This document shows positions 48,299 through 64,000 of a stretch of 64,000 bases of DNA, piece by piece. Location: sequence record PV231354.1; one strand, 5' to 3'. Below the pieces are notes generated by a model. The model was not told the DNA's origin. It did not search any database and saw only the letters and a list, made by a program, of their open reading frames with translations. The number at the start of each line of letters is the position of its first letter. The stretch's first letter is position 1. The position numbers and the translations under genes are program-made.

Positions 48299-48327
48299 TT
48301 GACAGTCGTGGTTAACGACGCTAGATG
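48299..48327 (+). promoter_or_regulatory. sigma70-type promoter without the conserved leader
   Basis: TTGACA-N17-TAGATG. Confidence 0.6.
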
Positions 48328-48407
48328 TCGTGAATCTTGACATGCGGTGGTCTGCATGAGAGACATGGTTAACGAGATGGACCCACTTGGTCCCTCGGGA
48401 GCCGCTC

Positions 48408-51845: not shown

Positions 51846-54578
51846 ATGACCTTCTATCCCATGGAGGACCGGGCCAAGGCTCGCTCCGTCGTCACCAACC
51901 TGCTGGACCTCCAGCGCGAAGCCGTCAAGGTGGGCCGTCAAGGGCTGATCCTGCCGCCCGAGCGCAAGCAGTTGATCACCCAGTTGACCGAGACCGAGGA
52001 TCACACCCGCTGGGTGGACCTCTTGGGTCAGTTCGCCGATCGCGTCCAGACCGATCACCTCTCGCGCCTGAAGCCGATCGCCAAGGACGACTTCAACGCC
52101 TTCTGCGAGTACGTCAACCCCGACGAGCCGCCGGCCTCCAAGTGGCACGTCTTCCTGACCGGCACGCTCCAGGAGATCGAGAACAACCCCGAGCTTGAGC
52201 GCTTCGTGCTCAACTGCCCGCCGGGCCACGCCAAGCCGCTGGACGTCGACACCGAAGTGCTGATGGCTGATGGCGCCTGGAAGCGTCTGGGCGACATCCA
52301 GGTGGGCGACTACGTGGTGGGCGAGAGCGGCGCGCGCTGCAAGGTCACCGCCGTCCATGAGCAGGGCGACCTCGACACCCTGAAGATCACCACCGCCCAC
52401 GGCCGGCAGATCATCGCCGCGCCCGACCACTCGTTCCGGGTCGGTGACGGCTGGAAGCCGGCCGACAAGCTGCGCCCCGGTGACGCCCTGTCCGTCGTCG
52501 GCGCCGCCAACCTCAACTACGACGCCAGCGGCAAGTCGATCGACCACTTCGAGCTTGCCGCCTACCTCCAGGCCAAGGGCGGGCGCTCCTACTTCCACCG
52601 CGTCCACAAGAGCGGGCCGAAGACCTACCGCAACGTCTATCTGTGGACGTCCGACCACCGCGAGGCCAGCCAGATCAGCACGTGCCTCAAGCGCATGGGC
52701 GTGGCCTTCAAGGGGCGGCTGGCCAAGACCGAGAAGGTCTGGAAGATGCGCCTCTCGACCGAGTGGGGCGACGCCCTGGCCGAGGAGTACGGCCTGGACG
52801 CCAAGATCGACGCGCGTCGTGTTCCGGCCTTTGTCACGAAAGGCGACGAGGAGCAGATCGGCCGCTACCTGTCGACCCTGACCTCGCTGGCCGGCGAAGC
52901 TCCCGAGCGCTACACCATCCCGCGTCTGGTGCTCTACTTCAAGAACCCCGACTTCGCCACCGACGTCCAGCGCCTGTTCGCCGCCGTCGGCGTCAACGCG
53001 CGCATCGAGCCGCGCAAGACCGGTCGCACCCGGCTGCACATCTCCGGCGCCGATCTCGAAGCCTACTTCGCCGCCGGCCTGACCTACACCGGCCCCAACG
53101 CCGACAAGCTGCCGGCCAAGCGCGCGGCGTTCCCGACCGCGCCCTCGACGCTGGCCGATCACGTCACCTGGATCGAGCCGCATGGGGTGCGCCCCTGCCG
53201 CTGCCTGACGGTCGAGAACGAGCACACCTTCATCGCCCAGGGCGTGGTGGTCCACAACTCGACCTACGCCTCGCGCCTGTTCGTGGCGTGGCGCCTGGGC
53301 CGCGATCCGCGCCAGAAGATCATCGGCGGCGGCCACTCCCAGCGCTTCGTCGAGAACGAGTTCAGCGGCAAGATTCGCAACCTCGTGCGCACGCCCCAGT
53401 TCAAGGACGTCTTCCCCGGCGTGGTCATCGACCATGCCACCTCGGCTAAGGACATGTGGGCGATCGCCGGGCACGGCGGGCAGTACGCCGCCAAGGGCGC
53501 CGGTCAGGCCATCCACGGTCTGCGCGCCAACTTCGTCTGCGTCGATGACCCCTATCCGTCGATCCAGAAGGCCGAGAGCGGGGCCTACCGCGAGGAAGTC
53601 CGCACGTGGTTCTTCGGTGACGTTGGCTCGCGTCTGTTGCCGCTCGCTAAAGTATTCCTCATCATGACGCGCTTTCATGAGGAAGATTTGACGGGTACCA
53701 TCCTCAAGTACAACCAAGACGCACTTGTGGAGTCTGACCGTTACCACATCGTCGAAGCGCCTGCTCTGTGTTACGACCCCGAGAACGACGTCCTCGGCAG
53801 GGCGCTCGGCGAAGTTTTGTGGGACTACTATGACTTGCATTACTTCAAACGGAAGCGCTCCGAGTGGAAGTACCAAAGATTTGCTTTGGTTTATCAACAA
53901 CTTGCGGACGCGGCCTCGGACACGTCGATCGCGTCCAAGTTCCAGACCTACCAGCACCTGCCGCACCTGGACCCGAAGGTCCTCAAGGCGCGCATGGACG
54001 CGGGGCATGTTGACGATCGCGGCCGGCCGATCCCGGACCGCAAGGAGCACTTCCGCCGCATCGTGACCTCGGTCGACGCGGCCCAGAAAAAGGGCGCGCG
54101 CAACGACTACACGGTCGTCCAGGTGTGGGGCGAGACCCACGATCGCAAGCACTACCTGATCTACCAGGAGCGCAAGAAGGTCGAGATCAACGACCTGATC
54201 GAGATGGTCGAGCGCATCTCCAAGCGCTTCGACGTCGACTCCATCCTGGTCGAGGACAAGGGCAACGGCACGGCCTACATCCAGGCGCGGGGCCAGACCG
54301 ACAACCAGCGGCGGCTCGCGCCGGCCCCGATCGAGGCGATCCAGGTCCCCAGCACCTACTCCAAGGAGTTCCGCTTCAACGAGGTCATCCCGATGATCGA
54401 GGCCCAGGAGGTCTACCTGCCCGACAAGGCGCCGTGGCTCGACCTCTTCATCCGCGAAGTCGGGCAGTTCCCCGAAGGCGCCCACGATGACCAAGTCGAC
54501 GCCATGACGCAGTACCTCCGCTGGGCCAAGTCCAAGCGCACGCGGTTCGGCGCGCGCAAGGTCGGCTCGATGGGCTGA
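51846..54578 (+). CDS. terL: terminase large subunit (intein-interrupted)
   Basis: Walker A PPGHAK|ST split by the intein; Walker B-like VCVDDP; nuclease SVDAA..., NDYT, VEDK, HDDQVDAMTQ. Confidence 0.93.
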   Translation: MTFYPMEDRAKARSVVTNLLDLQREAVKVGRQGLILPPERKQLITQLTETEDHTRWVDLLGQFADRVQTDHLSRLKPIAKDDFNAFCEYVNPDEPPASKWHVFLTGTLQEIENNPELERFVLNCPPGHAKPLDVDTEVLMADGAWKRLGDIQVGDYVVGESGARCKVTAVHEQGDLDTLKITTAHGRQIIAAPDHSFRVGDGWKPADKLRPGDALSVVGAANLNYDASGKSIDHFELAAYLQAKGGRSYFHRVHKSGPKTYRNVYLWTSDHREASQISTCLKRMGVAFKGRLAKTEKVWKMRLSTEWGDALAEEYGLDAKIDARRVPAFVTKGDEEQIGRYLSTLTSLAGEAPERYTIPRLVLYFKNPDFATDVQRLFAAVGVNARIEPRKTGRTRLHISGADLEAYFAAGLTYTGPNADKLPAKRAAFPTAPSTLADHVTWIEPHGVRPCRCLTVENEHTFIAQGVVVHNSTYASRLFVAWRLGRDPRQKIIGGGHSQRFVENEFSGKIRNLVRTPQFKDVFPGVVIDHATSAKDMWAIAGHGGQYAAKGAGQAIHGLRANFVCVDDPYPSIQKAESGAYREEVRTWFFGDVGSRLLPLAKVFLIMTRFHEEDLTGTILKYNQDALVESDRYHIVEAPALCYDPENDVLGRALGEVLWDYYDLHYFKRKRSEWKYQRFALVYQQLADAASDTSIASKFQTYQHLPHLDPKVLKARMDAGHVDDRGRPIPDRKEHFRRIVTSVDAAQKKGARNDYTVVQVWGETHDRKHYLIYQERKKVEINDLIEMVERISKRFDVDSILVEDKGNGTAYIQARGQTDNQRRLAPAPIEAIQVPSTYSKEFRFNEVIPMIEAQEVYLPDKAPWLDLFIREVGQFPEGAHDDQVDAMTQYLRWAKSKRTRFGARKVGSMG
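52236..53258 (+). mobile_element. 341-aa intein with degenerate LAGLIDADG domain
   Basis: PLDVDTEVLMADG...APDH...RCLTV..HTFIAQGVVVHN|S. Confidence 0.9.
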
Positions 54579-54641
54579 TTAACCATCTTCGTTCACCCTG
54601 TCCGGGCCTGTTAACCTTAACACACCGAGGGTTAACAGGCC

Positions 54642-54785
54642 AGGGACCCATCGAAATTAACCCTTGGGGACCCAGGGAAATCATCAGCCGGGGACCCTGC
54701 CAAATTCAACGCTGGGGACCCACCGAAATCATCCCTCGGGGACCCTAGCAAATCGTGGCTCGGGGACCCTGGCAAATCAAGGAGC
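54642..54785 (+). repeat. 6 x 24-bp tandem array GGGGACCC-N4-AAATY-N7
   Basis: GGGACCC at 54643, 54667, 54691, 54715, 54739, 54763. Confidence 0.9.
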
Positions 54786-54790
54786 CGGCG

Positions 54791-55024
54791 ATGGCCGAAC
54801 TCATGAGCCTGCTGTTCAACCTCGCCCCGTTCCTGCTGGCGGCGATCATCGTCTACCACGTCCTGGAGGCCTTCTGGGCGGTCTGCCTGTGGGTCTACGG
54901 CCTGCGCACCCTGTGGAAGGTCCACCGCGACGACCTGTGGGAGGCGCTGAGCCTGGAGCGCGCCCTGAGCCCGTTCACCCATCACCGGGACATGAACGGC
55001 AACCTGCCGCGCCCGCCGACCTGA
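54791..55024 (+). CDS. small membrane protein
   Basis: AAGGAG SD in the last repeat; hydrophobic N-terminus. Confidence 0.7.
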   Translation: MAELMSLLFNLAPFLLAAIIVYHVLEAFWAVCLWVYGLRTLWKVHRDDLWEALSLERALSPFTHHRDMNGNLPRPPT

Positions 55025-55032
55025 TGCCCTAA

Positions 55033-55056
55033 GTCACGGACTGTAGGTTTCATGAC
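55033..55056 (+). promoter_or_regulatory. 24-bp dyad site (GTCAY-N14-RTGAC), copy 1
   Basis: GTCACGGACTGTAGGTTTCATGAC. Confidence 0.5.
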
Positions 55057-55338
55057 AAGGTGGATTATTCCACAACGATTTCAAGGGCTTATCGCCATGT
55101 CGCTCCGCCGTCTCGTCCACGATCTGGCCGTCCGCTTCGTCGTTTTGGGGTGGATTTTTGCTCAAAAGCCCCAGAAATGGGCTCCAAAAGGGCATAATTT
55201 TCAGCCCAATCCGCCGGCCGAGGTCGTCCAGGACTGGCGCTTCATCGCCCTAGCCGTCGGCGCCAGCACCGCCGTGCTCTGGGCCGCATGCACAAGACGG
55301 TCGATCCGTCAATACCTCGCGTGGCGCAACCCCCGCAT

Positions 55339-55362
55339 GTCATAGACTAGGGCTTTCGTGAC
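55339..55362 (+). promoter_or_regulatory. 24-bp dyad site, copy 2
   Basis: GTCATAGACTAGGGCTTTCGTGAC. Confidence 0.5.
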
Positions 55363-55392
55363 GACCTCACGTTTACGTTACTGGATAAACCC

Positions 55393-55548
55393 ATGCCCCA
55401 CCTCGGTTTCTGGCTCTCTGCCGCCTGCATAGCTCTGGCCTGGGTGATCTGGGCCGCCGCCCGGCTGATCCGCCGCGATCGCCAGCGTCGCGCCGCTGGA
55501 GCGCGCCTGGGCCGGCGCACCGCAGCCGCCCATATGCGCCATATCTGA
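55393..55548 (+). CDS. 51-aa TM/basic peptide
   Basis: Manual ORF MPHLGFWLSAACIALAWVIW...; weak SD. Confidence 0.4.
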   Translation: MPHLGFWLSAACIALAWVIWAAARLIRRDRQRRAAGARLGRRTAAAHMRHI

Positions 55549-55594
55549 GCCCTTATCGCCCTTTAGGGCTCAGATACGCGACATTACGGCCCTC

Positions 55595-55751
55595 TTGACG
55601 CCCTCGTGTTCCTCTGAACGCGGGGGCGTTTTGACGTCGGCGCATTTCCCTCTTGACGCGCGAGCATTTCAACGCCGGAGCGTTTTGACGCGGGCGCATT
55701 TTCGATTCAACGCGCGAGCGTTTTGACGTCCGAACGTTTTTCAACTTGACG
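55595..55751 (+). repeat. degenerate TTGACG/TTCAACG repeat tract
   Basis: TTGACG x6; GCGTTTTGACG at 55626, 55680, 55718. Confidence 0.65.
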
Positions 55752-55779
55752 TCGTTTCATTTACCACGAGCGCCTTAGG

Positions 55780-56005
55780 GTTAACCGCCGAGCCTGGGAA
55801 TGGTTAAGGCCCGTTAACCATGTTTGTTAACCCTCAAGGCGTTAACCTATCACCCGTTAAGGTTAACGCACCCCGGCCATTAACCCTGAGCGTGTTAAGG
55901 TTAACGCCCCATTAAGGTTAACAATTAAGGTTAACGCGCCCGGTAACCCTGCCGTCGTTAAGGTTAACAAACATGGTTAACGGGCCAGACCGGCGTTAAC
56001 CTTAA
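55780..56005. repeat. GTTAAC/TTAA-dense tract (CtrA half-site-like)
   Basis: 19 TTAA and 11 GTTAAC counted. Confidence 0.8.
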
Positions 56006-56022
56006 CGGCGCGCGTCCCAGGC

Positions 56023-56058
56023 CATACCCGGTAGGGCCGTCAGGCCCTACCGGGTATG
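56023..56058. repeat. perfect 16-bp inverted repeat
   Basis: CATACCCGGTAGGGCC-GTCA-GGCCCTACCGGGTATG. Confidence 0.85.
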
Positions 56059-56110
56059 ACTCCGCTGGCCAGCGCCAGCCGGCGAGCCCGGCGCCGATTT
56101 TCTTTCGGCG

Positions 56111-56125
56111 TTTACTTTTTGTTAA
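56111..56125 (+). promoter_or_regulatory. CtrA box promoter
   Basis: TTTA-N7-TTAA, CTA 10 nt downstream. Confidence 0.7.
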
Positions 56126-56190
56126 GAATTGGCGTCTAGTGTCCTCCTTGTCGGGGCCAGCCCCGGCGCTCTTTGACATTGTGAGGCAAC

Positions 56191-56379
56191 ATGATTCCCT
56201 CTGAAGTTCTGAATCCGCGCGAGCACTGGACTCCCGTCGCCTCGCGCGAGGAAGCCGAAAAGATCGCCGCGCGCTGCACTGAAGGCGACCCCGTCGGCCG
56301 CTACTACGTCGAGGAAAAGGGCGCGGCCTACGCTGTCGCCTATGACGACGAGGCGGGCGAATTCGTCGCCTACCTGTAA
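56191..56379 (+). CDS. hypothetical protein
   Basis: GAGG SD. Confidence 0.7.
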   Translation: MIPSEVLNPREHWTPVASREEAEKIAARCTEGDPVGRYYVEEKGAAYAVAYDDEAGEFVAYL

Positions 56380-56391
56380 ACCTTTTGTTAA
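56377..56391 (+). promoter_or_regulatory. CtrA box promoter
   Basis: TAAA-N7-TTAA. Confidence 0.7.
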
Positions 56392-56441
56392 GACCTGACC
56401 TCTAAACAGGGGTCAGGTTCAACCCCTGGAGGCCCTGCCCC

Positions 56442-56828
56442 ATGCCCAACCCCGGACTCTTTCGCGCCATGGCCAAAGTCGCCAAGCCGGTGATTAAGGC
56501 CTATCACGCCGATTTTGAGATTCACGACGCCAAGGTGATTCACGGCCTAAAGGACGGCGATGTCATCTTGTGGGCGCCGGATGCGCACGGAACGACTCTT
56601 ATCGTCCTGGCGCGGGCTGGACGGCCCAACCATCGCGCCGCCGAACACTTCGAAGCCGCCAAGGCCCGCAACGCCCCCGCGTGGTTTGTCGCGTCGCTGT
56701 ACCATGACGGCGAGTCGGGTCACTGGAGCCTTTCGCCGGCGCCGGACGCGCCCGAAATCGTCGCCCGCTTCGCCGAACAAGCCGCCCGCGACACCGCCCC
56801 GGACCCGGTGCGCGAGCTACACCTTTAA
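56442..56828 (+). CDS. hypothetical protein
   Basis: GGAGG SD. Confidence 0.75.
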   Translation: MPNPGLFRAMAKVAKPVIKAYHADFEIHDAKVIHGLKDGDVILWAPDAHGTTLIVLARAGRPNHRAAEHFEAAKARNAPAWFVASLYHDGESGHWSLSPAPDAPEIVARFAEQAARDTAPDPVRELHL

Positions 56829-56839
56829 CCTTTTGTTAA
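56825..56839 (+). promoter_or_regulatory. CtrA box promoter
   Basis: TTAACCTTTTGTTAA. Confidence 0.85.
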
Positions 56840-56890
56840 GACTTGACCTCTAAACAGGGGTCAAGTCCAACCCCCTGGAGGCCCTGCCCC

Positions 56891-57430
56891 ATGTCTGCAA
56901 TCGAAACCGTCAACCTCTCGCGCGGCCGTGTTCTCACGGTCGAAATCGACGACTGCGCGCAAGAGCCCTACGCGGGCGACAAGGGCGTGCGAATCGTCGT
57001 CCTGCATCGCCAGTGGACGAATCCCGCCGCCGGCCTGCTGGACTCGGTCGAGGACGTCCAAGCCTTCGAGGCGGAGAACGCCGCGCCCGACTCGCCTTGG
57101 GCGATCTTCGCGCTATGGGTTATGGACCATAGCGGCCGGACCTTCAAAGCCGGCGCGCTGGGCGCCGGAAACCCGTTCGGCGCCGGACCCTATGCCCAGT
57201 GGGATAGCGGCCGGGTCGGAGTCATCGCCCTGGCGCGCGACGAGTGGCCCGCCGCCGACCTGACCACGGCGCAAAGCGTCGCCTCCACCTATCAGGCATG
57301 GGCCGAAGGGGAGGTTTACGAATACGTCATTTCGAACAAGCGGGGCGACGTGCTCGACTCGTGCGGCGGGTTCTACAGCGTCGAGGAAGCCTTGACCGAA
57401 GGGCGCACCGCCGCGCGGGTGAAGGCGTGA
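56891..57430 (+). CDS. conserved phage hypothetical protein
   Basis: WDSG..., WAEGEVY...DSCGGFY; start at the ATG after the SD. Confidence 0.75.
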   Translation: MSAIETVNLSRGRVLTVEIDDCAQEPYAGDKGVRIVVLHRQWTNPAAGLLDSVEDVQAFEAENAAPDSPWAIFALWVMDHSGRTFKAGALGAGNPFGAGPYAQWDSGRVGVIALARDEWPAADLTTAQSVASTYQAWAEGEVYEYVISNKRGDVLDSCGGFYSVEEALTEGRTAARVKA

Positions 57431-57621
57431 GGGTCGCCCGCGACGCCTTCGCCGTGTTCTGGACCCTCCCCGCCGGGGGCGTCCAGTTTCACGCCGACAT
57501 GAAGCGGGCGCTATACCCGACCGCCAAGGCCGCCGCCGACGCCTTCGCCGCCATGTTCCCCGGTGATCGCGTCCAGAGCGTGCGCGACGGCTCCGGCCGC
57601 TTCCTGCCCTTCAAGGCCTGA
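57427..57621 (+). CDS. hypothetical protein
   Basis: GTGA overlap. Confidence 0.6.
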   Translation: MRVARDAFAVFWTLPAGGVQFHADMKRALYPTAKAAADAFAAMFPGDRVQSVRDGSGRFLPFKA

Positions 57622-57626
57622 CAGAA

Positions 57627-57661
57627 CGCCCCGGAATCTTTTTCCGGGGCGTTTACTTTTT
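57627..57661 (+). terminator. intrinsic terminator overlapping the next CtrA box
   Basis: CGCCCCGGAA/TTCCGGGGCG stem + TTTACTTTTT. Confidence 0.8.
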
Positions 57662-57666
57662 GTTAA
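57652..57666 (+). promoter_or_regulatory. CtrA box promoter
   Basis: TTTA-N7-TTAA. Confidence 0.7.
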
Positions 57667-57730
57667 GGAATGGCGTCTAATGTCCTCTTGCGGCCGGGCA
57701 ATCCCGCCCCGCCGCCCTGGATCAAGTCCG

Positions 57731-58078
57731 ATGCAAACCGTTCCCACTGGTCACCGCTTCACCCGCTACGGGCAAACCTACGTTGTCCGCCCTGGCCTTC
57801 GCTATGTGCCGGAGGCGCAAGCCGCCGACGTTTCGCGCCGGGGCTGGACCCTGCAAAATTCCGACCTTAAGGCCCTGCTGGGCTGGGCGCCAAAACTCCC
57901 CCGCGAAGCCGTCGCCCCGGTCATGATTGGTGACGTGTCGGTCTACGTCATGAGCGCGGCCGAAGCCGCCGCCCGCAAGCCGAAGAACAACCGGCCGCAC
58001 CGCGTGACGGCGGTTTGCCCCGGATGCGCCGCCCATGTCCCCGCCGGGCGCCTCTCGCAACACAAGTGCAAGCTTTAA
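57731..58078 (+). CDS. hypothetical protein with C-terminal C2H-type Zn motif
   Basis: CPGC...LSQHKC. Confidence 0.7.
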   Translation: MQTVPTGHRFTRYGQTYVVRPGLRYVPEAQAADVSRRGWTLQNSDLKALLGWAPKLPREAVAPVMIGDVSVYVMSAAEAAARKPKNNRPHRVTAVCPGCAAHVPAGRLSQHKCKL

Positions 58079-58089
58079 CCTTTTGTTAA
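58075..58089 (+). promoter_or_regulatory. CtrA box promoter
   Basis: TTAACCTTTTGTTAA. Confidence 0.85.
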
Positions 58090-58137
58090 GACCCGGCCGC
58101 TAGAGTGGCCGGGTCAAACCCCTCTGGAGCCCCTCCC

Positions 58138-58659
58138 ATGCCGGAATTTATCCTTGACCAGTCGGGCGCGGTTGAACTGCCCGCGCCGACCCCCAACGCC
58201 GCGCCCGCCGCCTATGAATTCGGCGACCTCGACGACTTCACCCAAGGCTATATCGAGGCCCTGTTTTTCACCGAGTCGTCGCCGGCCTTCATGCGCGCCG
58301 AATGGTTCGGCGCCGAGTGTCAAGAGGCCTTGGAGGAAGGCACGGCGGACGGGAACATTCCGGGCGATGTCGGATTCGCCGACCTCGCGCCCGCCACCCT
58401 GGCGCGCATCGTCGCCGATTGCGCCGACTTCCAACGCGACCACGCCGACACCCTGGCTAAGGCCTATGACCACGGCGGCGCGTCGGGCGACTATGACGAC
58501 GCCGCCGCCGGCCGTGATTATTGGTACACCCGCAACGGCCATGGCGTCGGGTTCTGGGATCGCGGACTCGGCGAGATCGGCGAGGCCCTGAGCAAGGCCG
58601 CCCGCTACAGCGAGCAAAACGCCTCTTTCGAGGATGACGAAAAGGTCTATCTCTCTTAA
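58138..58659 (+). CDS. conserved phage hypothetical protein
   Basis: YIEALFF...TRNGHGVGFWDR. Confidence 0.8.
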   Translation: MPEFILDQSGAVELPAPTPNAAPAAYEFGDLDDFTQGYIEALFFTESSPAFMRAEWFGAECQEALEEGTADGNIPGDVGFADLAPATLARIVADCADFQRDHADTLAKAYDHGGASGDYDDAAAGRDYWYTRNGHGVGFWDRGLGEIGEALSKAARYSEQNASFEDDEKVYLS

Positions 58660-58670
58660 CCTTTTGTTAA
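58656..58670 (+). promoter_or_regulatory. CtrA box promoter
   Basis: TTAACCTTTTGTTAA. Confidence 0.85.
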
Positions 58671-58751
58671 GACTTGGCCTCTAGGGTCAGGTTGTCCCGG
58701 CGCCGGGGCTGGAACCCCCGGCGCATCCATTCCGTGAAAGGAATCCATACC

Positions 58752-59498
58752 GTGTCTTTTGGTCAATTCTCCGCCGACGCCCGCGCCCCGCTGTCGAAAG
58801 CCGCCATGCTGGACGCCCTCCCCGCCGCGCGCCGTGACGCTCTGGTCAAGTCCAGCAAGCCGGCGCGAAACACGCTCGATTACACAACCGCCGACGGCGT
58901 GCGCCGCGTGCGCTTGCATGACACCGACGTCCTGACGTTCCACGTTGGCGGCGCCGTCGAGATCAACACGGGCGGCTGGAATACCCTAACCACGCGCGAC
59001 CGAATCAACACGTTCGCCCCGCCTCACGTGCGCGTCTACAGCGACAAGGGCCGCGCCGTGGTTCACGCCTTGCCGGCCGGTGACGGCGCCGTCACGTGGT
59101 CCAGCCCCGCCGCGTCCAAGCCGTTCGCCAAGCGCGCCACCGTTCACCCGGACGGCCGAATCGAAGTGGACGCGACCGTCAAGGAACTGGAGGCGATTCC
59201 TAGCCTCATCCGCCGCTATCTGGAGGCCTTCAAGGCCGGTTTCCCGTTCAACTCGTCGGGTGACCCGTGGATGACGCCCGGCGCCCTTGTCGCCCCGGAA
59301 ACCGCCCTTGACTGGCTGGGCGCCGACACCGGCAAGCCGTACCTGTTCGACTCGATCCTGTTTCACGCCCATGTCGCGGCCGGCCTGACCGAAGAGGGCG
59401 CGGCGTTCTACATGCGCGAGGCCGCCCGGCGCGGCGTCGACAAATTCAATCTCGGCCGCATCCGGCGCTATCTGAAGCGTTGCCTTCGCGAAGCCTAG
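58752..59498 (+). CDS. conserved phage hypothetical protein
   Basis: LHDTDV...INTGGW..LTTRDRIN. Confidence 0.75.
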   Translation: MSFGQFSADARAPLSKAAMLDALPAARRDALVKSSKPARNTLDYTTADGVRRVRLHDTDVLTFHVGGAVEINTGGWNTLTTRDRINTFAPPHVRVYSDKGRAVVHALPAGDGAVTWSSPAASKPFAKRATVHPDGRIEVDATVKELEAIPSLIRRYLEAFKAGFPFNSSGDPWMTPGALVAPETALDWLGADTGKPYLFDSILFHAHVAAGLTEEGAAFYMREAARRGVDKFNLGRIRRYLKRCLREA

Positions 59499-59507
59499 AC
59501 CCTGCCC

Positions 59508-59540
59508 GGCCGCGCCTCCCCTGGCGCGGCCTTTCTTTTC
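59508..59540 (+). terminator. intrinsic terminator
   Basis: GGCCGCGCC/GGCGCGGCC stem + TTTCTTTT. Confidence 0.8.
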
Positions 59541-59550
59541 CGTGTACGCG

Positions 59551-59565
59551 TTAACTTCTTGTTAA
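59551..59565 (+). promoter_or_regulatory. CtrA box promoter
   Basis: TTAACTTCTTGTTAA. Confidence 0.85.
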
Positions 59566-59635
59566 GACTTTACGCGCTAATGTCCCCTTGCCGCCGGGCA
59601 ATCCCGCCCCGCCGCCTCTCAAAGGATCGCCACCC

Positions 59636-60256
59636 ATGGCCCGCCTGATCAAAGCCAAGTCCACCGCCGAACAAGCCGAAGCCCTGGCCAGCCTGCAAAA
59701 AATGCTCAAGCCGGGCGACACGGTTTATCCCGTGCTGCGCCACGTCTCGACCTCCGGCATGATGCGAGTCATTGACCTGATTATCCCGGTCACGGTCGAG
59801 ACGTCGCAAACCCTGCCGGCCGGCGCGCGCGGCTTCAAGATCGGCGTTCAAGCCTATGCGACCCCGCCGGAGCGCAACGCCCCGCGCGCCTTCTCAACCG
59901 GCGCCGTGACGGCTTTCGACGCCGACACCGTGACCATTGCCTATCAGGCCACCGCCGACGGCCGGGGCGTGGCGGAGTCGGTGACGTGGCCCCGTGGTCA
60001 GGTCAAGTTCTACGCCAAGAGCAAGCGCCCCGGCGTCCGCTCGATCGGCTGGCTTGCCGCGAAGGCCATGGGCGACACTTTCGACGCCGACCGCCAAGGA
60101 ATCAAGGTCGGCGGGTGCGGAATGGATATGGGCTTTCACCTCGTTTACAGCCTGGGCCGCACGCTCTGGCCGAAGGGAACGAAAAAGCCGCACGGCTCGC
60201 GCAATGGCGAGCCCGACCGCGACGGCGGTTATGCGCTGAAACATTCCTGGCTTTAA
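59636..60256 (+). CDS. conserved phage hypothetical protein
   Basis: RHVSTSGMMR...GCGMDMGFHLVYSL. Confidence 0.8.
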   Translation: MARLIKAKSTAEQAEALASLQKMLKPGDTVYPVLRHVSTSGMMRVIDLIIPVTVETSQTLPAGARGFKIGVQAYATPPERNAPRAFSTGAVTAFDADTVTIAYQATADGRGVAESVTWPRGQVKFYAKSKRPGVRSIGWLAAKAMGDTFDADRQGIKVGGCGMDMGFHLVYSLGRTLWPKGTKKPHGSRNGEPDRDGGYALKHSWL

Positions 60257-60267
60257 CTTTTTGTTAA
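60253..60267 (+). promoter_or_regulatory. CtrA box promoter
   Basis: TTAACTTTTTGTTAA. Confidence 0.85.
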
Positions 60268-60333
60268 GAGTTTAGCCGCTAATGTCTCCTTGCGGCCGGG
60301 CAATCCCGCCCGGCCGCACCCGGAACCAAGCCC

Positions 60334-60606
60334 ATGACCCGCGCTCAAGTCCTCGCCGAAATCGCCGCCCTTGAAGGCGTCCAAGCCCGTTTCGTCACCG
60401 AAACCAAGGAATTCCGCGTCACCCTGACCTTTGGCCCGCTTCCCATGGGGCGCGGCTCGCAAGCCTGGATGAACGCCCGCCGGGAAGCCGTCGCCTACTA
60501 CACCGAAGACAAGGCCGACGCCCTGGCCACCGCCCGCGACATGTCGGCCCGTTGGGTCGCCATGACCCCCGCGCAACGTGATCACCTGTACCGCAACGCC
60601 GCGTAA
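60334..60606 (+). CDS. hypothetical protein
   Basis: AYYTEDKADAL. Confidence 0.75.
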   Translation: MTRAQVLAEIAALEGVQARFVTETKEFRVTLTFGPLPMGRGSQAWMNARREAVAYYTEDKADALATARDMSARWVAMTPAQRDHLYRNAA

Positions 60607-60617
60607 CCCTTCGTTAA
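60603..60617 (+). promoter_or_regulatory. CtrA box promoter
   Basis: GTAA-N7-TTAA. Confidence 0.7.
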
Positions 60618-60670
60618 GACCCGGCCGCTAGAGTGGCCGGGTCATCAACCCCCCGCAAGGATCGCCCGAC

Positions 60671-60949
60671 ATGCGCAAGCCCCTGACCCAAGAGCAAAAG
60701 GCCCGCCGCCGCGCGCAACGCCGCGCCGCCCGCCTGACCTGGAGCGACGAACGCCGCGCGGCCGAATACGCCCGCCAATCGCGCTTTTTCCTGATGATCG
60801 CCGAACGCGCCCAAGTCGCGGGCGACCGCACCGAAGCCGCCCGCCTCGCCACCGTCGCGCAACGCAAGGTAACGAACTGGCGCATGGCTCAAGCGTGCGC
60901 CCGCATCAACGCCCTTTCCGTCCACGCCTGGGCCGCTGTCGCGGCCTAA
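60671..60949 (+). CDS. basic hypothetical protein
   Basis: AAGGA SD; Arg-rich. Confidence 0.75.
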   Translation: MRKPLTQEQKARRRAQRRAARLTWSDERRAAEYARQSRFFLMIAERAQVAGDRTEAARLATVAQRKVTNWRMAQACARINALSVHAWAAVAA

Positions 60950-60966
60950 CCGGAGAACCCCGCCCC

Positions 60967-61290
60967 ATGCCCCCGATGACTCACCCTCACGCCCTGGCCT
61001 TGATCGCGCTCGCTGAAAAGGTCTTGCCCCTGACCCGGCTGGACCCGCTGAATCAGCGCGCCGCCGCTGTCGATCTTATCGGCGACCTCTACAGCCTCGC
61101 CGACTCCATCGACGCCACCGCCGGCCACTTGGTCGCCGCTGTCAACGGCGCCTTGCGCGACGGCTGCGAGGGTTACGCGCCCAAGAGCCGCGCCGCCGCC
61201 GCTGTCGCCAGCGTCCGCGCCGACGAACTGCGCGCCGCCCTGGAAGCCTACACCGAAGCCGCCGCCCTGGCCCTGCCGAAAGTCGCCTGA
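60967..61290 (+). CDS. Ala-rich hypothetical protein
   Basis: GGAG SD. Confidence 0.7.
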   Translation: MPPMTHPHALALIALAEKVLPLTRLDPLNQRAAAVDLIGDLYSLADSIDATAGHLVAAVNGALRDGCEGYAPKSRAAAAVASVRADELRAALEAYTEAAALALPKVA

Positions 61291-61291
61291 C

Positions 61292-61876
61292 ATGACCGTC
61301 ACCCGCTACCGCCTCCCGCCCGCCGGCCGTGTCGCCCGCGAACTGTCGGAAACCCATTTCGCCGCCCATGACCTGCTAGGCCACGTCAACGGCGCCGCCC
61401 TGACGCCCGACGACGCCCGCAAGCTGGCCAAGACTCGCGACTCGCTCATGACCTTCGCCGCCGGCGCCTATACGTTCAAGGCCCCCGACTCCGTGCTCGC
61501 AACCCTGCTTTGGGTTGTCGAAATGGCGCAAGAGCGCGCCACCGACTCCGACTTCAACACGGCGCGCGAAGCGCTGGACGAACACGACGCCTTAGCGTTC
61601 GTCACCGATTGGCTAGAGGCGCACGGGCTGGACGTGGCCCGCATCCGGGGCGCCGAGTTGAGCGCCGAAGCCCGCGCTTCGTTGGTTGAGGAAGCGAACG
61701 CCGAACAAGCCAAGCTCGACGCCCTGGAAGCCGCCCAGAACCCCGAAACGGCCGCCGACGTGATCACCGAAGCCCTCGCCCCGTTCCTGGGCTCCACGGT
61801 CGCGGAAAACCACGCCGACGACGTGCTAGACGCCCTCACGCGCGCCGGCTTCACCCTGACCCGCAAGGAGGCCTGA
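61292..61876 (+). CDS. hypothetical protein
   Basis: ORF in operon. Confidence 0.75.
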   Translation: MTVTRYRLPPAGRVARELSETHFAAHDLLGHVNGAALTPDDARKLAKTRDSLMTFAAGAYTFKAPDSVLATLLWVVEMAQERATDSDFNTAREALDEHDALAFVTDWLEAHGLDVARIRGAELSAEARASLVEEANAEQAKLDALEAAQNPETAADVITEALAPFLGSTVAENHADDVLDALTRAGFTLTRKEA

Positions 61877-61880
61877 AACC

Positions 61881-62369
61881 GTGCGCACCGTGACCCGCAA
61901 CGCCGACCCCGCAAAGATCATCGGGGGCTATCTCATGAGCGCCCAACGCTCCGGCGCCCTGACCGCCTCAGACGAGGTTATCGCCACGCTTGAGGCCGCC
62001 GGCTATGTCATCGCCCGCCGCCGCGACGTGTTCACCGATACCGGCCAAAAGCTGGGCGCCGTCCTGGCGTCGCTTTATGACGCCGTGCCGAATTCGGCCG
62101 TCCGAACCCAACGCCTCGCCGACGCTCTGAAGCCGGCGCGAGATTACGTCTATCAGCCCCGGTTCCGGGTTGTGCTGGACGCCGCGCCGGGCGCTCGCCT
62201 CACCGACTGCGAAACCGGCGCATGCGTCTATTTCCAGCCGGGCGACGACGCCGACGCCTTCCGCGAAGAGTTTGGCCCGTGGGTGCGCGACGACGCCCCC
62301 GAAACGGCCGAAGGCCAGCCCCTGGCCTCGATGATGGACCCGACCGCCGAAGAGTATTTCAGCGGCTAA
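61881..62369 (+). CDS. hypothetical protein
   Basis: AAGGAGG SD. Confidence 0.75.
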   Translation: MRTVTRNADPAKIIGGYLMSAQRSGALTASDEVIATLEAAGYVIARRRDVFTDTGQKLGAVLASLYDAVPNSAVRTQRLADALKPARDYVYQPRFRVVLDAAPGARLTDCETGACVYFQPGDDADAFREEFGPWVRDDAPETAEGQPLASMMDPTAEEYFSG

Positions 62370-62393
62370 GTCATCAAACCTACCGTCTATGAC
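62370..62393 (-). promoter_or_regulatory. 24-bp dyad site, copy 3 (inverted)
   Basis: Reverse complement GTCATAGACGGTAGGTTTGATGAC. Confidence 0.5.
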
Positions 62394-62550
62394 ATGTCAC
62401 GGGCTGAATACTTGGCCCGTGACGACTTCCACTAGTAAAGCTCACGCCTGTTTTCGTGACATAGCGCAAGGAACTGAAATCGTTGGAAAAACTCCTAGAG
62501 GGTCACAAAGTTCTGGTTTGGCTGCTGCTTCTGGCTTGCCTCTGGCGCTT

Positions 62551-62565
62551 TTAACCCTTTGTTAA
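62551..62565 (+). promoter_or_regulatory. CtrA box promoter
   Basis: TTAACCCTTTGTTAA. Confidence 0.85.
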
Positions 62566-62639
62566 GACTTTACCCGCTAGGGTGACTTTGCGGCCGGGCA
62601 ATCCCGCCCCGCCGCCCTTCCTTCTCTGGAGCCGCTACC

Positions 62640-63080
62640 ATGCAAACCGCTTCCGTGATCCTCCCCGCCCAAACCCTGGCCGGCGCCGACCTTGGCCCCG
62701 TGCTGATGGTCTTCGCCCTGGAACTGTCGCAGCACTTCGGCGACGTCGCCCAAGCCCCGACCGTCGAGCGCTGGACCGATGAGGCGACGGGCGCCGAATT
62801 CGTCGCCGACTGTGTGGCGTTCACGGTGTCGGCGGACTGGACCGCCAAGGGCGGACGCATGGCGCGCCGCCTGGAGAACATGGCCGCCCGCTACGCCGCC
62901 CCGTGCGAGGCCCCGGCCCTGACCGTCCAGCACGCCGACGGCTCAACCGTCTACGTCGCCGCCCTGGAGGCCCTGGCGCGCCCTGCCCCGGTGCAAGGCC
63001 CCTCGCGCATCGCAGACCCGGCTTTCCTGCCCCGCCAGCGTGAGGACAAGGCCGCCCGCTTCGAGCGCCTGACCGCCTAG
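62640..63080 (+). CDS. hypothetical protein
   Basis: GGAG SD. Confidence 0.75.
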   Translation: MQTASVILPAQTLAGADLGPVLMVFALELSQHFGDVAQAPTVERWTDEATGAEFVADCVAFTVSADWTAKGGRMARRLENMAARYAAPCEAPALTVQHADGSTVYVAALEALARPAPVQGPSRIADPAFLPRQREDKAARFERLTA

Positions 63081-63104
63081 GCCCTGGCCTAGCCTCTCCC
63101 CTTG

Positions 63105-63137
63105 GCGCACCGCCTCGCAAGCGGTGCGCTTTTCTTT
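63105..63137 (+). terminator. intrinsic terminator
   Basis: GCGCACCGC/GCGGTGCGC stem + TTTTCTTT. Confidence 0.8.
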
Positions 63138-63142
63138 GCGTA

Positions 63143-63157
63143 TTAACTTGTTGTTAA
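63143..63157 (+). promoter_or_regulatory. CtrA box promoter
   Basis: TTAACTTGTTGTTAA. Confidence 0.85.
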
Positions 63158-63225
63158 GAGTTTAGCTGATAGTGTCTCCTTGTTGGCGGCGCATCCCGCG
63201 CCGCTCCTCTCTTGGATCGCTCGAC

Positions 63226-63618
63226 ATGGCCCGCCCTTCTGACCTGCTCAACGTCAACGCCGCCCGCGTCCTGGCTTGCCTCGAAGCCCTGGCCGGCGTC
63301 GTCAAGACCGCCCCGGAAGCCGACCGCGCCGCCTTTTCCTTCCTGCTGGACGCGGCCGAATTCGTCGCCTCCTGGCGCCGCAACCATACGGAAACCGACC
63401 GTCGCCGCGCCTACGGTGCGGCGTGCGCGGCGCAAGCCCTGGCCCTGACCAATGCCTATCAGCCCGCGACCATGCAAGGCGGGGCGGTGCGCCGCGCCCT
63501 GGGCGCCTATGCCGCCGCCCTTAAGCTGCTGCTGGACGGCGAGCCGGTGCAAGCCGTGCGCGCGGCCGAAGGCGCCGCCCAAAGCGTGCGCGGGCGCTTC
63601 GCTAACACCCGCATCTAG
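63226..63618 (+). CDS. Ala-rich hypothetical protein
   Basis: Start reassigned to ATG 63226. Confidence 0.7.
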   Translation: MARPSDLLNVNAARVLACLEALAGVVKTAPEADRAAFSFLLDAAEFVASWRRNHTETDRRRAYGAACAAQALALTNAYQPATMQGGAVRRALGAYAAALKLLLDGEPVQAVRAAEGAAQSVRGRFANTRI

Positions 63619-63632
63619 TAACCTTTTGTTAA
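63618..63632 (+). promoter_or_regulatory. CtrA box promoter
   Basis: GTAA-N7-TTAA. Confidence 0.7.
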
Positions 63633-63676
63633 GACCCCCTGGCCTATAGTCAGGGGGTCGCAAGGAGACACCCGAC

Positions 63677-63868
63677 ATGACCCGCCCCGGCCCCGCCTCG
63701 CTCCTCTCGCCCGCCGCCACCTTCTCGGCGCATAACCTGACCCTTCCGGGCGCTCGCCCTATGCCCCTGCCCAAGGCGCAAGGCCTGACCTATGGCCAGT
63801 GCATCGCCCTGGGCGCGAGCCTGGGCTTGCTGGGCTTCCTCGCCTTGCGCGTGTTCGGTCTGGTCTGA
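63677..63868 (+). CDS. small protein with C-terminal TM helix
   Basis: AAGGAG SD. Confidence 0.7.
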   Translation: MTRPGPASLLSPAATFSAHNLTLPGARPMPLPKAQGLTYGQCIALGASLGLLGFLALRVFGLV

Positions 63869-63898
63869 CCAGACCCCCGGCGCCCCCGGTCGCCTCGC

Positions 63899-63931
63899 GG
63901 TAGGGCTGTCCCATATTGAGACGGCCCTACC
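63899..63931. repeat. 12-bp hairpin related to 56023-56058
   Basis: GGTAGGGCTGTC-N9-GACGGCCCTACC. Confidence 0.7.
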
Positions 63932-64000
63932 GGGGTAGTGTTTCTTTTTGGGACGAGGGACCCAAAGGCCCCCTACGTTAACCATTTTTGGCGGCGCCCC

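Follow-up and report, generated by a model that had tools for sequence, protein, structure and literature searches.

The right-hand end of the genome of Caulobacter phage RBC8 raises the question of what reads a series of TTAA-N7-TTAA boxes that precede its small orphan genes. The window analyzed here is the last 64,000 nt of the RBC8 record PV231354.1; RBC8 is a phiCbK-like Caulobacter phage, and the record names Caulobacter vibrioides CB15 as its host. The boxes are all held within the right-hand copy of the direct terminal repeat (DTR):

53799-64000, + strand: DTR, right-end copy of Caulobacter phage RBC8, 10,202 bp, identical to the left genome end

A sequence-only reading of this DNA had listed 12 such boxes and taken them for sites at which the host regulator CtrA activates promoters. 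Our data indicate that the boxes are very probably promoters activated by phosphorylated CtrA (CtrA~P) and read by the host RNA polymerase. In this respect, the core finding is a re-discovery, in a new isolate of the phiCbK-like group, of a result that has been published and partly tested.

Exact TTAA-N7-TTAA occurs eight times in the 64-kb window (0.03 expected), and with at most one mismatch it occurs 13 times (0.8 expected), a number reached in no shuffle. The positional skew is strong, as all 13 matches lie in 55901-63632, that is, in the last 8.1 kb of the window and inside the DTR. There are none, at this mismatch threshold, elsewhere in the window, and the earlier statement that 7469-46507 contains no boxes was therefore borne out by the window scan. 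The 12 box starts that had been listed were also correct, with seven perfect boxes and five that have a single mismatch in the first half-site. A perfect 13th match, at 55901, was absent from that list; it lies within a TTAA/GGTTAAC cluster and has no promoter context. As had been described, every one of the 12 boxes ends in TTAAG and is followed by CTA (ATA at 63143) 10-11 nt past the TTAA. When counted from the G of TTAAG, this distance is 9-10 nt; the earlier count ran from the TTAA. Relative to the listed boxes, a TAnnGT hexamer lies 11-12 nt downstream and a start codon 59-97 nt downstream, on the coding strand. The 12 promoter modules are given below, where class A marks promoters with a hairpin across the -10 and class B those with a leader hairpin, both of which are discussed further on.

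56111-56142, + strand: module 1; box TTTACTTTTTGTTAA (56111-56125), -10-like TAGTGT (56137-56142); gene 56191-56379
56377-56408, + strand: module 2, class A; box TAAACCTTTTGTTAA, TAAACA; gene 56442-56828
56825-56856, + strand: module 3, class A; box TTAACCTTTTGTTAA, TAAACA; genes 56891-57430 and 57427-57621
57652-57683, + strand: module 4, class B; box TTTACTTTTTGTTAA, TAATGT; gene 57731-58078
58075-58106, + strand: module 5, class A; box TTAACCTTTTGTTAA, TAGAGT; gene 58138-58659
58656-58687, + strand: module 6, class A with a leader hairpin; box TTAACCTTTTGTTAA, TAGGGT; gene ending at 59498, likely start GTG 58752
59551-59583, + strand: module 7, class B; box TTAACTTCTTGTTAA, TAATGT; gene 59636-60256
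60253-60285, + strand: module 8, class B; box TTAACTTTTTGTTAA, TAATGT; gene 60334-60606
60603-60634, + strand: module 9, class A; box GTAACCCTTCGTTAA, TAGAGT; four-gene operon 60671-62369
62551-62583, + strand: module 10, class B; box TTAACCCTTTGTTAA, TAGGGT; gene 62640-63080, ortholog of phiCbK gp018
63143-63175, + strand: module 11, class B; box TTAACTTGTTGTTAA, (A)TAGTGT; gene 63226-63618
63618-63650, + strand: module 12, class A; box GTAACCTTTTGTTAA, TATAGT; gene 63677-63868

All 12 boxes lie between genes, and the six that overlap an upstream gene do so solely at its stop codon. The ends of the open reading frames agree with the earlier claim that a TAA stop forms part of the first half-site at six boxes (56377, 56825, 58075, 58656, 60253, and 60603). 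In addition, a TAG stop at 63616-63618 overlaps the first base of box 63618. It was likewise correct that the T-runs of terminators enter two boxes, 56111 and 57652, and canonical terminators were found a short distance 5' of two others:

56090-56112, + strand: terminator-like hairpin, weaker; its T-run enters box 56111
57624-57654, + strand: intrinsic terminator; its T-run doubles as the first half of box 57652 and the box spacer
59508-59531, + strand: canonical intrinsic terminator, 20 nt 5' of box 59551
63104-63130, + strand: canonical intrinsic terminator, 13 nt 5' of box 63143

The reported lack of a TTGACA -35 element also held, in that a consensus scan of the region finds no sigma-70 promoters on the + strand. 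The two that it finds, both on the minus strand, are at chance level (1.4 expected). The description of these promoters as acting gene by gene was slightly overstated. Most promoters do serve a single gene, but there are 12 boxes for 16 genes, and four genes (57427-57621, 60967-61290, 61292-61876, and 61881-62369) lack a box of their own, each following behind a neighbour.

That CtrA sites occur in phages of this kind, which the sequence-only reading had mentioned, was reported by Mascolo et al. (2022, Front Microbiol 13:918015; PMC9437464). They found predicted CtrA sites concentrated in the DTRs of phiCbK-like phages, 5' of genes of unknown function, and gained or lost between relatives; CcrRogue is within their set, with 23 sites (PMC9437464). 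In electrophoretic mobility-shift assays (EMSA), CtrA~P shifted the upstream fragments of phiCbK gp005 and gp018, and box mutants were unshifted (PMC9437464). The corresponding lacZ fusions were active in the wild type, and in a ctrA401(ts) strain their activity was >29-fold lower for gp005 and 5-fold lower for gp018 (PMC9437464). The EMSA and ctrA(ts) reporter experiments that the sequence-only reading had proposed are therefore largely done already, as that study ran them in phiCbK. In RBC8, the gene behind box 62551 (62640-63080) encodes the gp018 ortholog, with 70.5% identity by blastp. Box 62551 and the phiCbK gp018 promoter are alike in box type, in their 12-nt spacing, and in the hexamer TAGGGT. 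No ortholog of phiCbK gp005 was found in RBC8 by blastp. Together, the published EMSA and reporters support the boxes as CtrA-activated promoters, and we infer that all 12 in RBC8 act like those of gp005 and gp018.

RBC8 and the phages of Mascolo et al. have in common the phage group, the motif, and the concentration of sites in the DTR upstream of orphan genes. RBC8 itself is outside their set, and they favour a delayed rather than swarmer-stage expression. Like their LPEG phages, in which CtrA sites are concentrated in one region of the genome, RBC8 has the positional skew, the intergenic sites, and an alphaproteobacterial host with CtrA. The fixed spacing between box and hexamer, the overlaps with stop codons and terminators, and the hairpins are not described in the searched text of PMC9437464. 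Searches of that text for hairpin, stem-loop, RNA polymerase, and transcription start gave no match, and sigma was matched once, in the reference list. Gill et al. (2012) contains no description of these promoters.

Under our preferred interpretation, each box would be the activator site of a promoter for host RNA polymerase that needs phosphorylated CtrA, and it would stand in for the -35 element. With transcription starting ~7 nt past the TAnnGT hexamer, the box would extend from about -38/-39 to -24/-25. CtrA~P, a winged-helix response regulator of the OmpR family, would occupy both TTAA(C) half-sites and bring sigma-73 RNA polymerase to a weak -10. The 12 promoters would thus drive 16 orphan genes of the DTR, mostly one gene each, with the units set apart by canonical terminators (four junctions) or by a stop codon fused to the box (six junctions).

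The predicted layout is that of an activator-dependent promoter. PhoB/OmpR-type promoters have a tandem winged-helix dimer site that ends ~10-12 nt before the -10, and they have no -35 hexamer. The phage boxes resemble them, as an activator box would replace the -35, although the regulator and motif differ, and any contact of CtrA with sigma region 4 at the phage promoters is putative. The full-site CtrA promoters of the host (ctrA P2, fliQ, fliL) have a single TTAA-N7-TTAA over the -35 and are activated by CtrA~P, as is predicted for those of the phage. At such host promoters, the 5' base of the motif is near -35, for example at -39 in ctrA P2 (Zhou et al. 2015, PMC4287350), and in fliQ and fliL the first half-site is degenerate and the second perfect (PMC11264516). 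The phage boxes, however, vary much less among themselves than the host promoters do (TTGTTAA[G/C], T-rich spacer, TAGnGT), are packed with one per gene, and are accompanied by hairpins specific to the DTR.

Several points weigh against this interpretation. An experimentally tested ortholog exists for one of the 12 RBC8 promoters, and the published promoter tests, in whichever phage, include no class A promoter. The strongest tested promoter, that of phiCbK gp005, has CAGGGT at the hexamer position, not TAGGGT. The assignment of the -10 and the position of the box at -38/-39 are both predictions from the sequence. Lastly, box positions 9-11, which are nearly always TTG, and the T-rich spacer are conserved beyond the needs of CtrA binding alone, and RNA polymerase or a constraint at the RNA level may act on these bases too.

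The promoter design is conserved well beyond RBC8. Across an 8.5-kb region, the window is 100% identical to RBC8 and RBC11, and identity is 91% for CcrRogue, 86% for CcrSwift, and ~78% for phiCbK; when the DTR is compared, the figure for CcrRogue is 90.8%. With the box as anchor, we compared 75 distinct modules of RBC8, phiCbK, Rogue, Swift, Magneto, BL57, BL10, and Colossus. Their consensus is [T/G]T[A/T]AC-y-T-y-TTG-TTAA-[G/C], then N, then cTAGgGT. In this set, hardly any variation is seen in the second half-site or in the TTG that precedes it; the first half-site is looser, as in fliQ and fliL of the host. The spacing from box to hexamer is 11 nt in 50 modules and 12 nt in 24, and the hexamers at this distance are TAGGGT, TAGTGT, TAATGT, or TAGGTT. 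Minus-strand genes of the relatives are preceded by the whole module inverted. The Brevundimonas phage Bajun, a member of the phiCbK-like subfamily, has an equal promoter design. The design has its limits, as CcrSC employs TTAA composites differently, upstream of TTGACA promoters, and Lacusarx has little of it 3' of its terminase gene. A scan of viral contigs with TTAACNTNTTGTTAAG returned mostly single chance matches in unrelated contigs, and the only locus with multiple hits has Colossus-type modules.

Two phages with comparable arrangements are worth considering. In phi29, early promoters are wired to Spo0A, a response regulator of the host whose activity reflects developmental state; those promoters are repressed by Spo0A, whereas the phiCbK promoters are activated by CtrA. 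In T5, the pre-early genes occupy a terminal repeat of roughly 10 kb, the first-step-transfer DNA, which is similar to the RBC8 DTR in size and in its small orphan genes read inward, and phiCbK-like phages have further T5-like traits (Gill et al. 2012). T5 reads its pre-early genes from sigma-70 promoters that are strong and constitutive, unlike the activator-dependent boxes of the phage described here. Two-step injection is a feature of T5 and would be hypothetical in phiCbK-like phages; the location of the RBC8 genes in a DTR is established.

If CtrA~P does activate these promoters, the next question is when they fire in the host cell cycle. The dependence of infection on the pilus is taken from the literature on phiCbK-like phages. 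On the view of the sequence-only reading, expression would begin without delay in infected swarmer cells, where CtrA~P is abundant; the promoters would then resemble G1-class CtrA promoters of the host such as pilA and sciP. We regard this as a serious possibility, if one that falls short of probable. CtrA~P is present in swarmer cells, and a separate G1 class of CtrA promoters exists that is kept off in S phase by MucR1/2, not by SciP (PMC6169604; PMC4287350). By 15 min after infection of mixed cultures, phage mRNA makes up 14% of all transcripts, and 41% of phiCbK genes have their peak by then. It is plausible that the DTR genes enter the cell first because the DTR sits at both genome ends, and they would do so whichever end goes first. 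On the other hand, the 52 promoters of the host that carry a full TTAA-N7-TTAA at -35 reach their maximum in predivisional cells, at 60-120 min (PMC4287350), CtrA-activated promoters are blocked by SciP in swarmer cells (PMC4287350; PMC6169604), and Mascolo et al. argue for deferment.

In the "lytic deferment" of Mascolo et al. (2022), the promoters are silent in swarmer cells and come on when CtrA has been re-made and phosphorylated in the predivisional cell. They propose this waiting because full-site promoters of the host follow predivisional CtrA and because SciP blocks activation in swarmer cells. Deferment would delay the lytic programme, and we consider it possible while leaning somewhat against it. 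The full-site CtrA promoters of the host do behave in this way (PMC4287350), and the proposal comes from the group behind the EMSA and reporter work. However, it was put forward as a hypothesis without time-resolved evidence, phage mRNA is abundant at 15 min, and a wait of ~1 h by the DTR genes would expose linear phage DNA. Moreover, the unique region has TTGACA-type promoters that could start the programme without CtrA.

Six of the 12 promoters have a further feature, a hairpin of 10-12 bp that begins at the base after the TTAA of the box and whose loop and 3' arm take in the hexamer. We call these promoters class A (boxes 56377, 56825, 58075, 58656, 60603, and 63618). Their hairpins are as follows:

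56392-56419, + strand: class A hairpin, 12 bp, starting just past the box; loop and 3' arm contain the -10 hexamer; z -5.3
56840-56867, + strand: class A hairpin, 12 bp; z -6.0
58090-58115, + strand: class A hairpin, 11 bp; z -6.8; covariation
58671-58693, + strand: class A hairpin, 10 bp, four G.U pairs; z -3.7
60618-60643, + strand: class A hairpin, 11 bp; z -6.8; covariation
63633-63659, + strand: class A hairpin, 11 bp; z -6.9; covariation

In orthologous promoters from six phages, 99% of the cells in the class A stems are paired, compared with 33-55% in slid controls, and in five of ten pairs both sides have changed. The stems vary, but neither the box nor the C-T-A of the loop does. The wobbles are all G.U in the sense strand, with no A.C, and the hairpin at 58671-58693 folds in the sense strand only, as four of its ten pairs are G.U. 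Because the stems covary and the wobbles work in the sense strand only, we rejected two other explanations, a DNA cruciform and a binding site for a dimeric protein. An intrinsic terminator was also rejected: a U-run is absent, the sequence past the stems being TCAACCCC, AAACCCC, ATCAACC, or GCAAGG, and the terminator scan does not list the class A hairpins. Neither does that scan find a terminator 5' of the class A boxes. Since the 5' arm lies 5' of any start that this promoter could use, the hairpin can be folded by read-through RNA only. The class A DNA thus seems to encode both a -10 and a sense-strand hairpin formed by RNA reading through from the upstream gene.

This raises an alternative, that the class A elements (half of the 12) function chiefly as RNA, within a polycistronic transcript, serving in processing, 3'-end protection, or pausing, and are not active promoters. 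The covarying stems with their sense-only wobbles, the 5' arm upstream of any usable start, and the boxes without a preceding terminator are all consistent with it, as is the succession of an AU-rich single-stranded tract and a stable hairpin (z -3.7 to -6.9). Nevertheless, we consider it unlikely. The invariant box and loop C-T-A, amid changing stems, fit a -10 function, and the spacing between box and hexamer equals that of class B and of the tested gp018 promoter. The stem, without its U-run, is no canonical terminator, and the promoter and RNA roles are in any case compatible.

The class B promoters have a different, G+C-rich hairpin that begins 6-8 nt past the hexamer, where the mRNA is predicted to have its 5' end. 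Such leader hairpins were found at 57652, 59551, 60253, 62551, and 63143, weakly at 56111, and also in the class A module at 58656:

56150-56167, + strand: leader hairpin, variant type, weak; z -1.9
57690-57715, + strand: class B leader hairpin, core GGCAATCCCGCC; z -3.5
58700-58724, + strand: leader hairpin of module 6; z -2.1
59590-59615, + strand: class B leader hairpin, core GGCAATCCCGCC; z -2.0
60291-60318, + strand: class B leader hairpin, core GGCAATCCCGCC; z -5.7
62590-62615, + strand: class B leader hairpin, core GGCAATCCCGCC; z -3.5
63185-63205, + strand: class B leader hairpin, variant loop GCGCATCCCGCGC; z -3.6

The exact core GGCAATCCCGCC, present in four leaders of the window, is invariant in 19 distinct related copies. 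For the core GGCAAUCCCGCC, the 19 invariant copies come from six phages, and in the 64-kb window it is restricted to these promoters. The outer stem covaries, with 87% of cells paired compared with 34-54% in slid controls. A conserved CTCCTTG before the class B hairpin was considered as a boxA-like RNA element and rejected, as it lies 5' of the predicted start. Stem-loops at the 5' end are known to protect mRNA in Escherichia coli. On that basis, the simplest reading of class B would be a 5'-terminal hairpin that protects the mRNA, and the invariant loop hints at a specific partner. A search of the text of PMC9437464 found no earlier description of either hairpin feature. That the CtrA promoters of the DTR bear a second code, at the level of RNA, is a tentative idea that we are inclined to doubt.

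A reader of the boxes other than CtrA, either sigma-73 polymerase alone, using TTGTTAA as a short-spaced -35, or a TTAA-binding protein of the phage, is very improbable and is largely refuted already for gp005 and gp018: the near-invariant TTG at box positions 9-11 does resemble the start of TTGACA, and the DTR also has a large GGTTAAC/TTAA array that CtrA or another factor may bind, but the reporters are active in uninfected cells, so that a phage protein is unnecessary, and dead in ctrA401(ts), box mutation abolishes the CtrA~P shift, and TTGTTA as a real -35 is ruled out because the hexamer is 12 nt away, a spacer too short for a sigma-70-type -35/-10 pair.

The array just mentioned lies before the first promoter:

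55775-56010, unstranded: dense TTAA/GGTTAAC cluster, 19 TTAA in ~225 nt with inverted repeats; includes the match at 55901; not a promoter module

GGTTAAC occurs 17 times in the window (1.5 expected), mostly in this cluster. The cluster contains a 34-nt inverted repeat (55808-55841 and 55953-55986) and, at 55895-55922, the composite TTAA-N2-TTAA-N7-TTAA-N2-TTAA. Clusters of this kind were also observed in phiCbK, Colossus, and the Brevundimonas phage Bajun, and CcrSC has a palindromic version ~45 nt 5' of TTGACA promoters. Just 5' of the cluster, at 55590-55750, are direct repeats of ~54 nt with six TTGACG motifs (a Caulobacter -35-like heptamer), which could be iteron-like or promoter-like. 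Between the cluster and the first promoter, at 56023-56058, there is a perfect hairpin (16 bp, 4-nt loop) that lacks a T-run. Further upstream, six tandem 24-nt repeats, GGGGACCC-N4-AAAT-N8, occupy 54643-54780, between the terminase stop and the first DTR gene (54791). A CtrA-type 8-mer, TTAACCAT, occurs six times in the window (0.13 expected), including at 54579, directly past the terminase stop, and at 63978, near the end of the DTR. Outside the DTR, at 48299-48375, a promoter-like TTGACA-N17-TAGATG has GGTTAAC within its spacer, in an operator-like position. A non-coding stretch of 180 nt 5' of box 62551 (62370-62550) is lower in G+C than its surroundings and contains several GTCAC/GTGAC repeats.

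The start of the DTR at 53799 falls within the large-terminase gene (51846-54578), and for this reason the left genome end has just the 3' part of that gene; annotations of the relatives describe the large terminase as intein-containing. Database searches gave few indications of what the DTR genes do. None of the 19 DTR proteins matches Pfam above threshold, PADLOC has no match for the ten largest, and the sole PHROGs matches of the DTR proteins are to families of unknown function, among them PHROG 1915 for the protein of 58138-58659 (E = 1e-41). A search of the DTR against Rfam gave just a sub-threshold miRNA match, which arises from the large palindrome at 55813-55981. For RBC8_011/341, the annotated start, 58692, is 4 nt past the -10-like hexamer of module 6. 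The promoter and the alignment to PHROG 19389 (residues 22-268) both agree with a start at the GTG of 58752, which has AAAGGAA in front of it. The deposited start is thus probably 20 codons too early, and the true start is probably GTG 58752.

Some box promoters of the relatives precede a different kind of sequence. In Colossus, those near 1902, 3467, and 8240 (minus) and 5076 (plus) drive a conserved G+C-rich sequence, as does the one near 2292 (minus) in BL57. This sequence (...CCGGGCGGGACCCGG...GGGCTCTTCGAACCGTAGGGGCGC...) has no obvious reading frame, is absent from the window, and may be a small RNA.

Overall, a virulent phage here very probably has an entire gene block under the control of its host's cell-cycle master regulator, an idea already published and partly tested. 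To this, the window adds a uniform natural set of 12 activator-only promoters, two unexplained classes of hairpin, and an exact promoter grammar that is valid across two host genera. Were the hairpins recognition sites for a phage or host factor in mRNA protection, processing, or antitermination, or were the class A hairpin to link transcription of the gene before it to the promoter that follows, early expression would have two gates, CtrA at the DNA level and hairpin structure at the RNA level. With its genes tied to CtrA, the infection would read the developmental state of the host.

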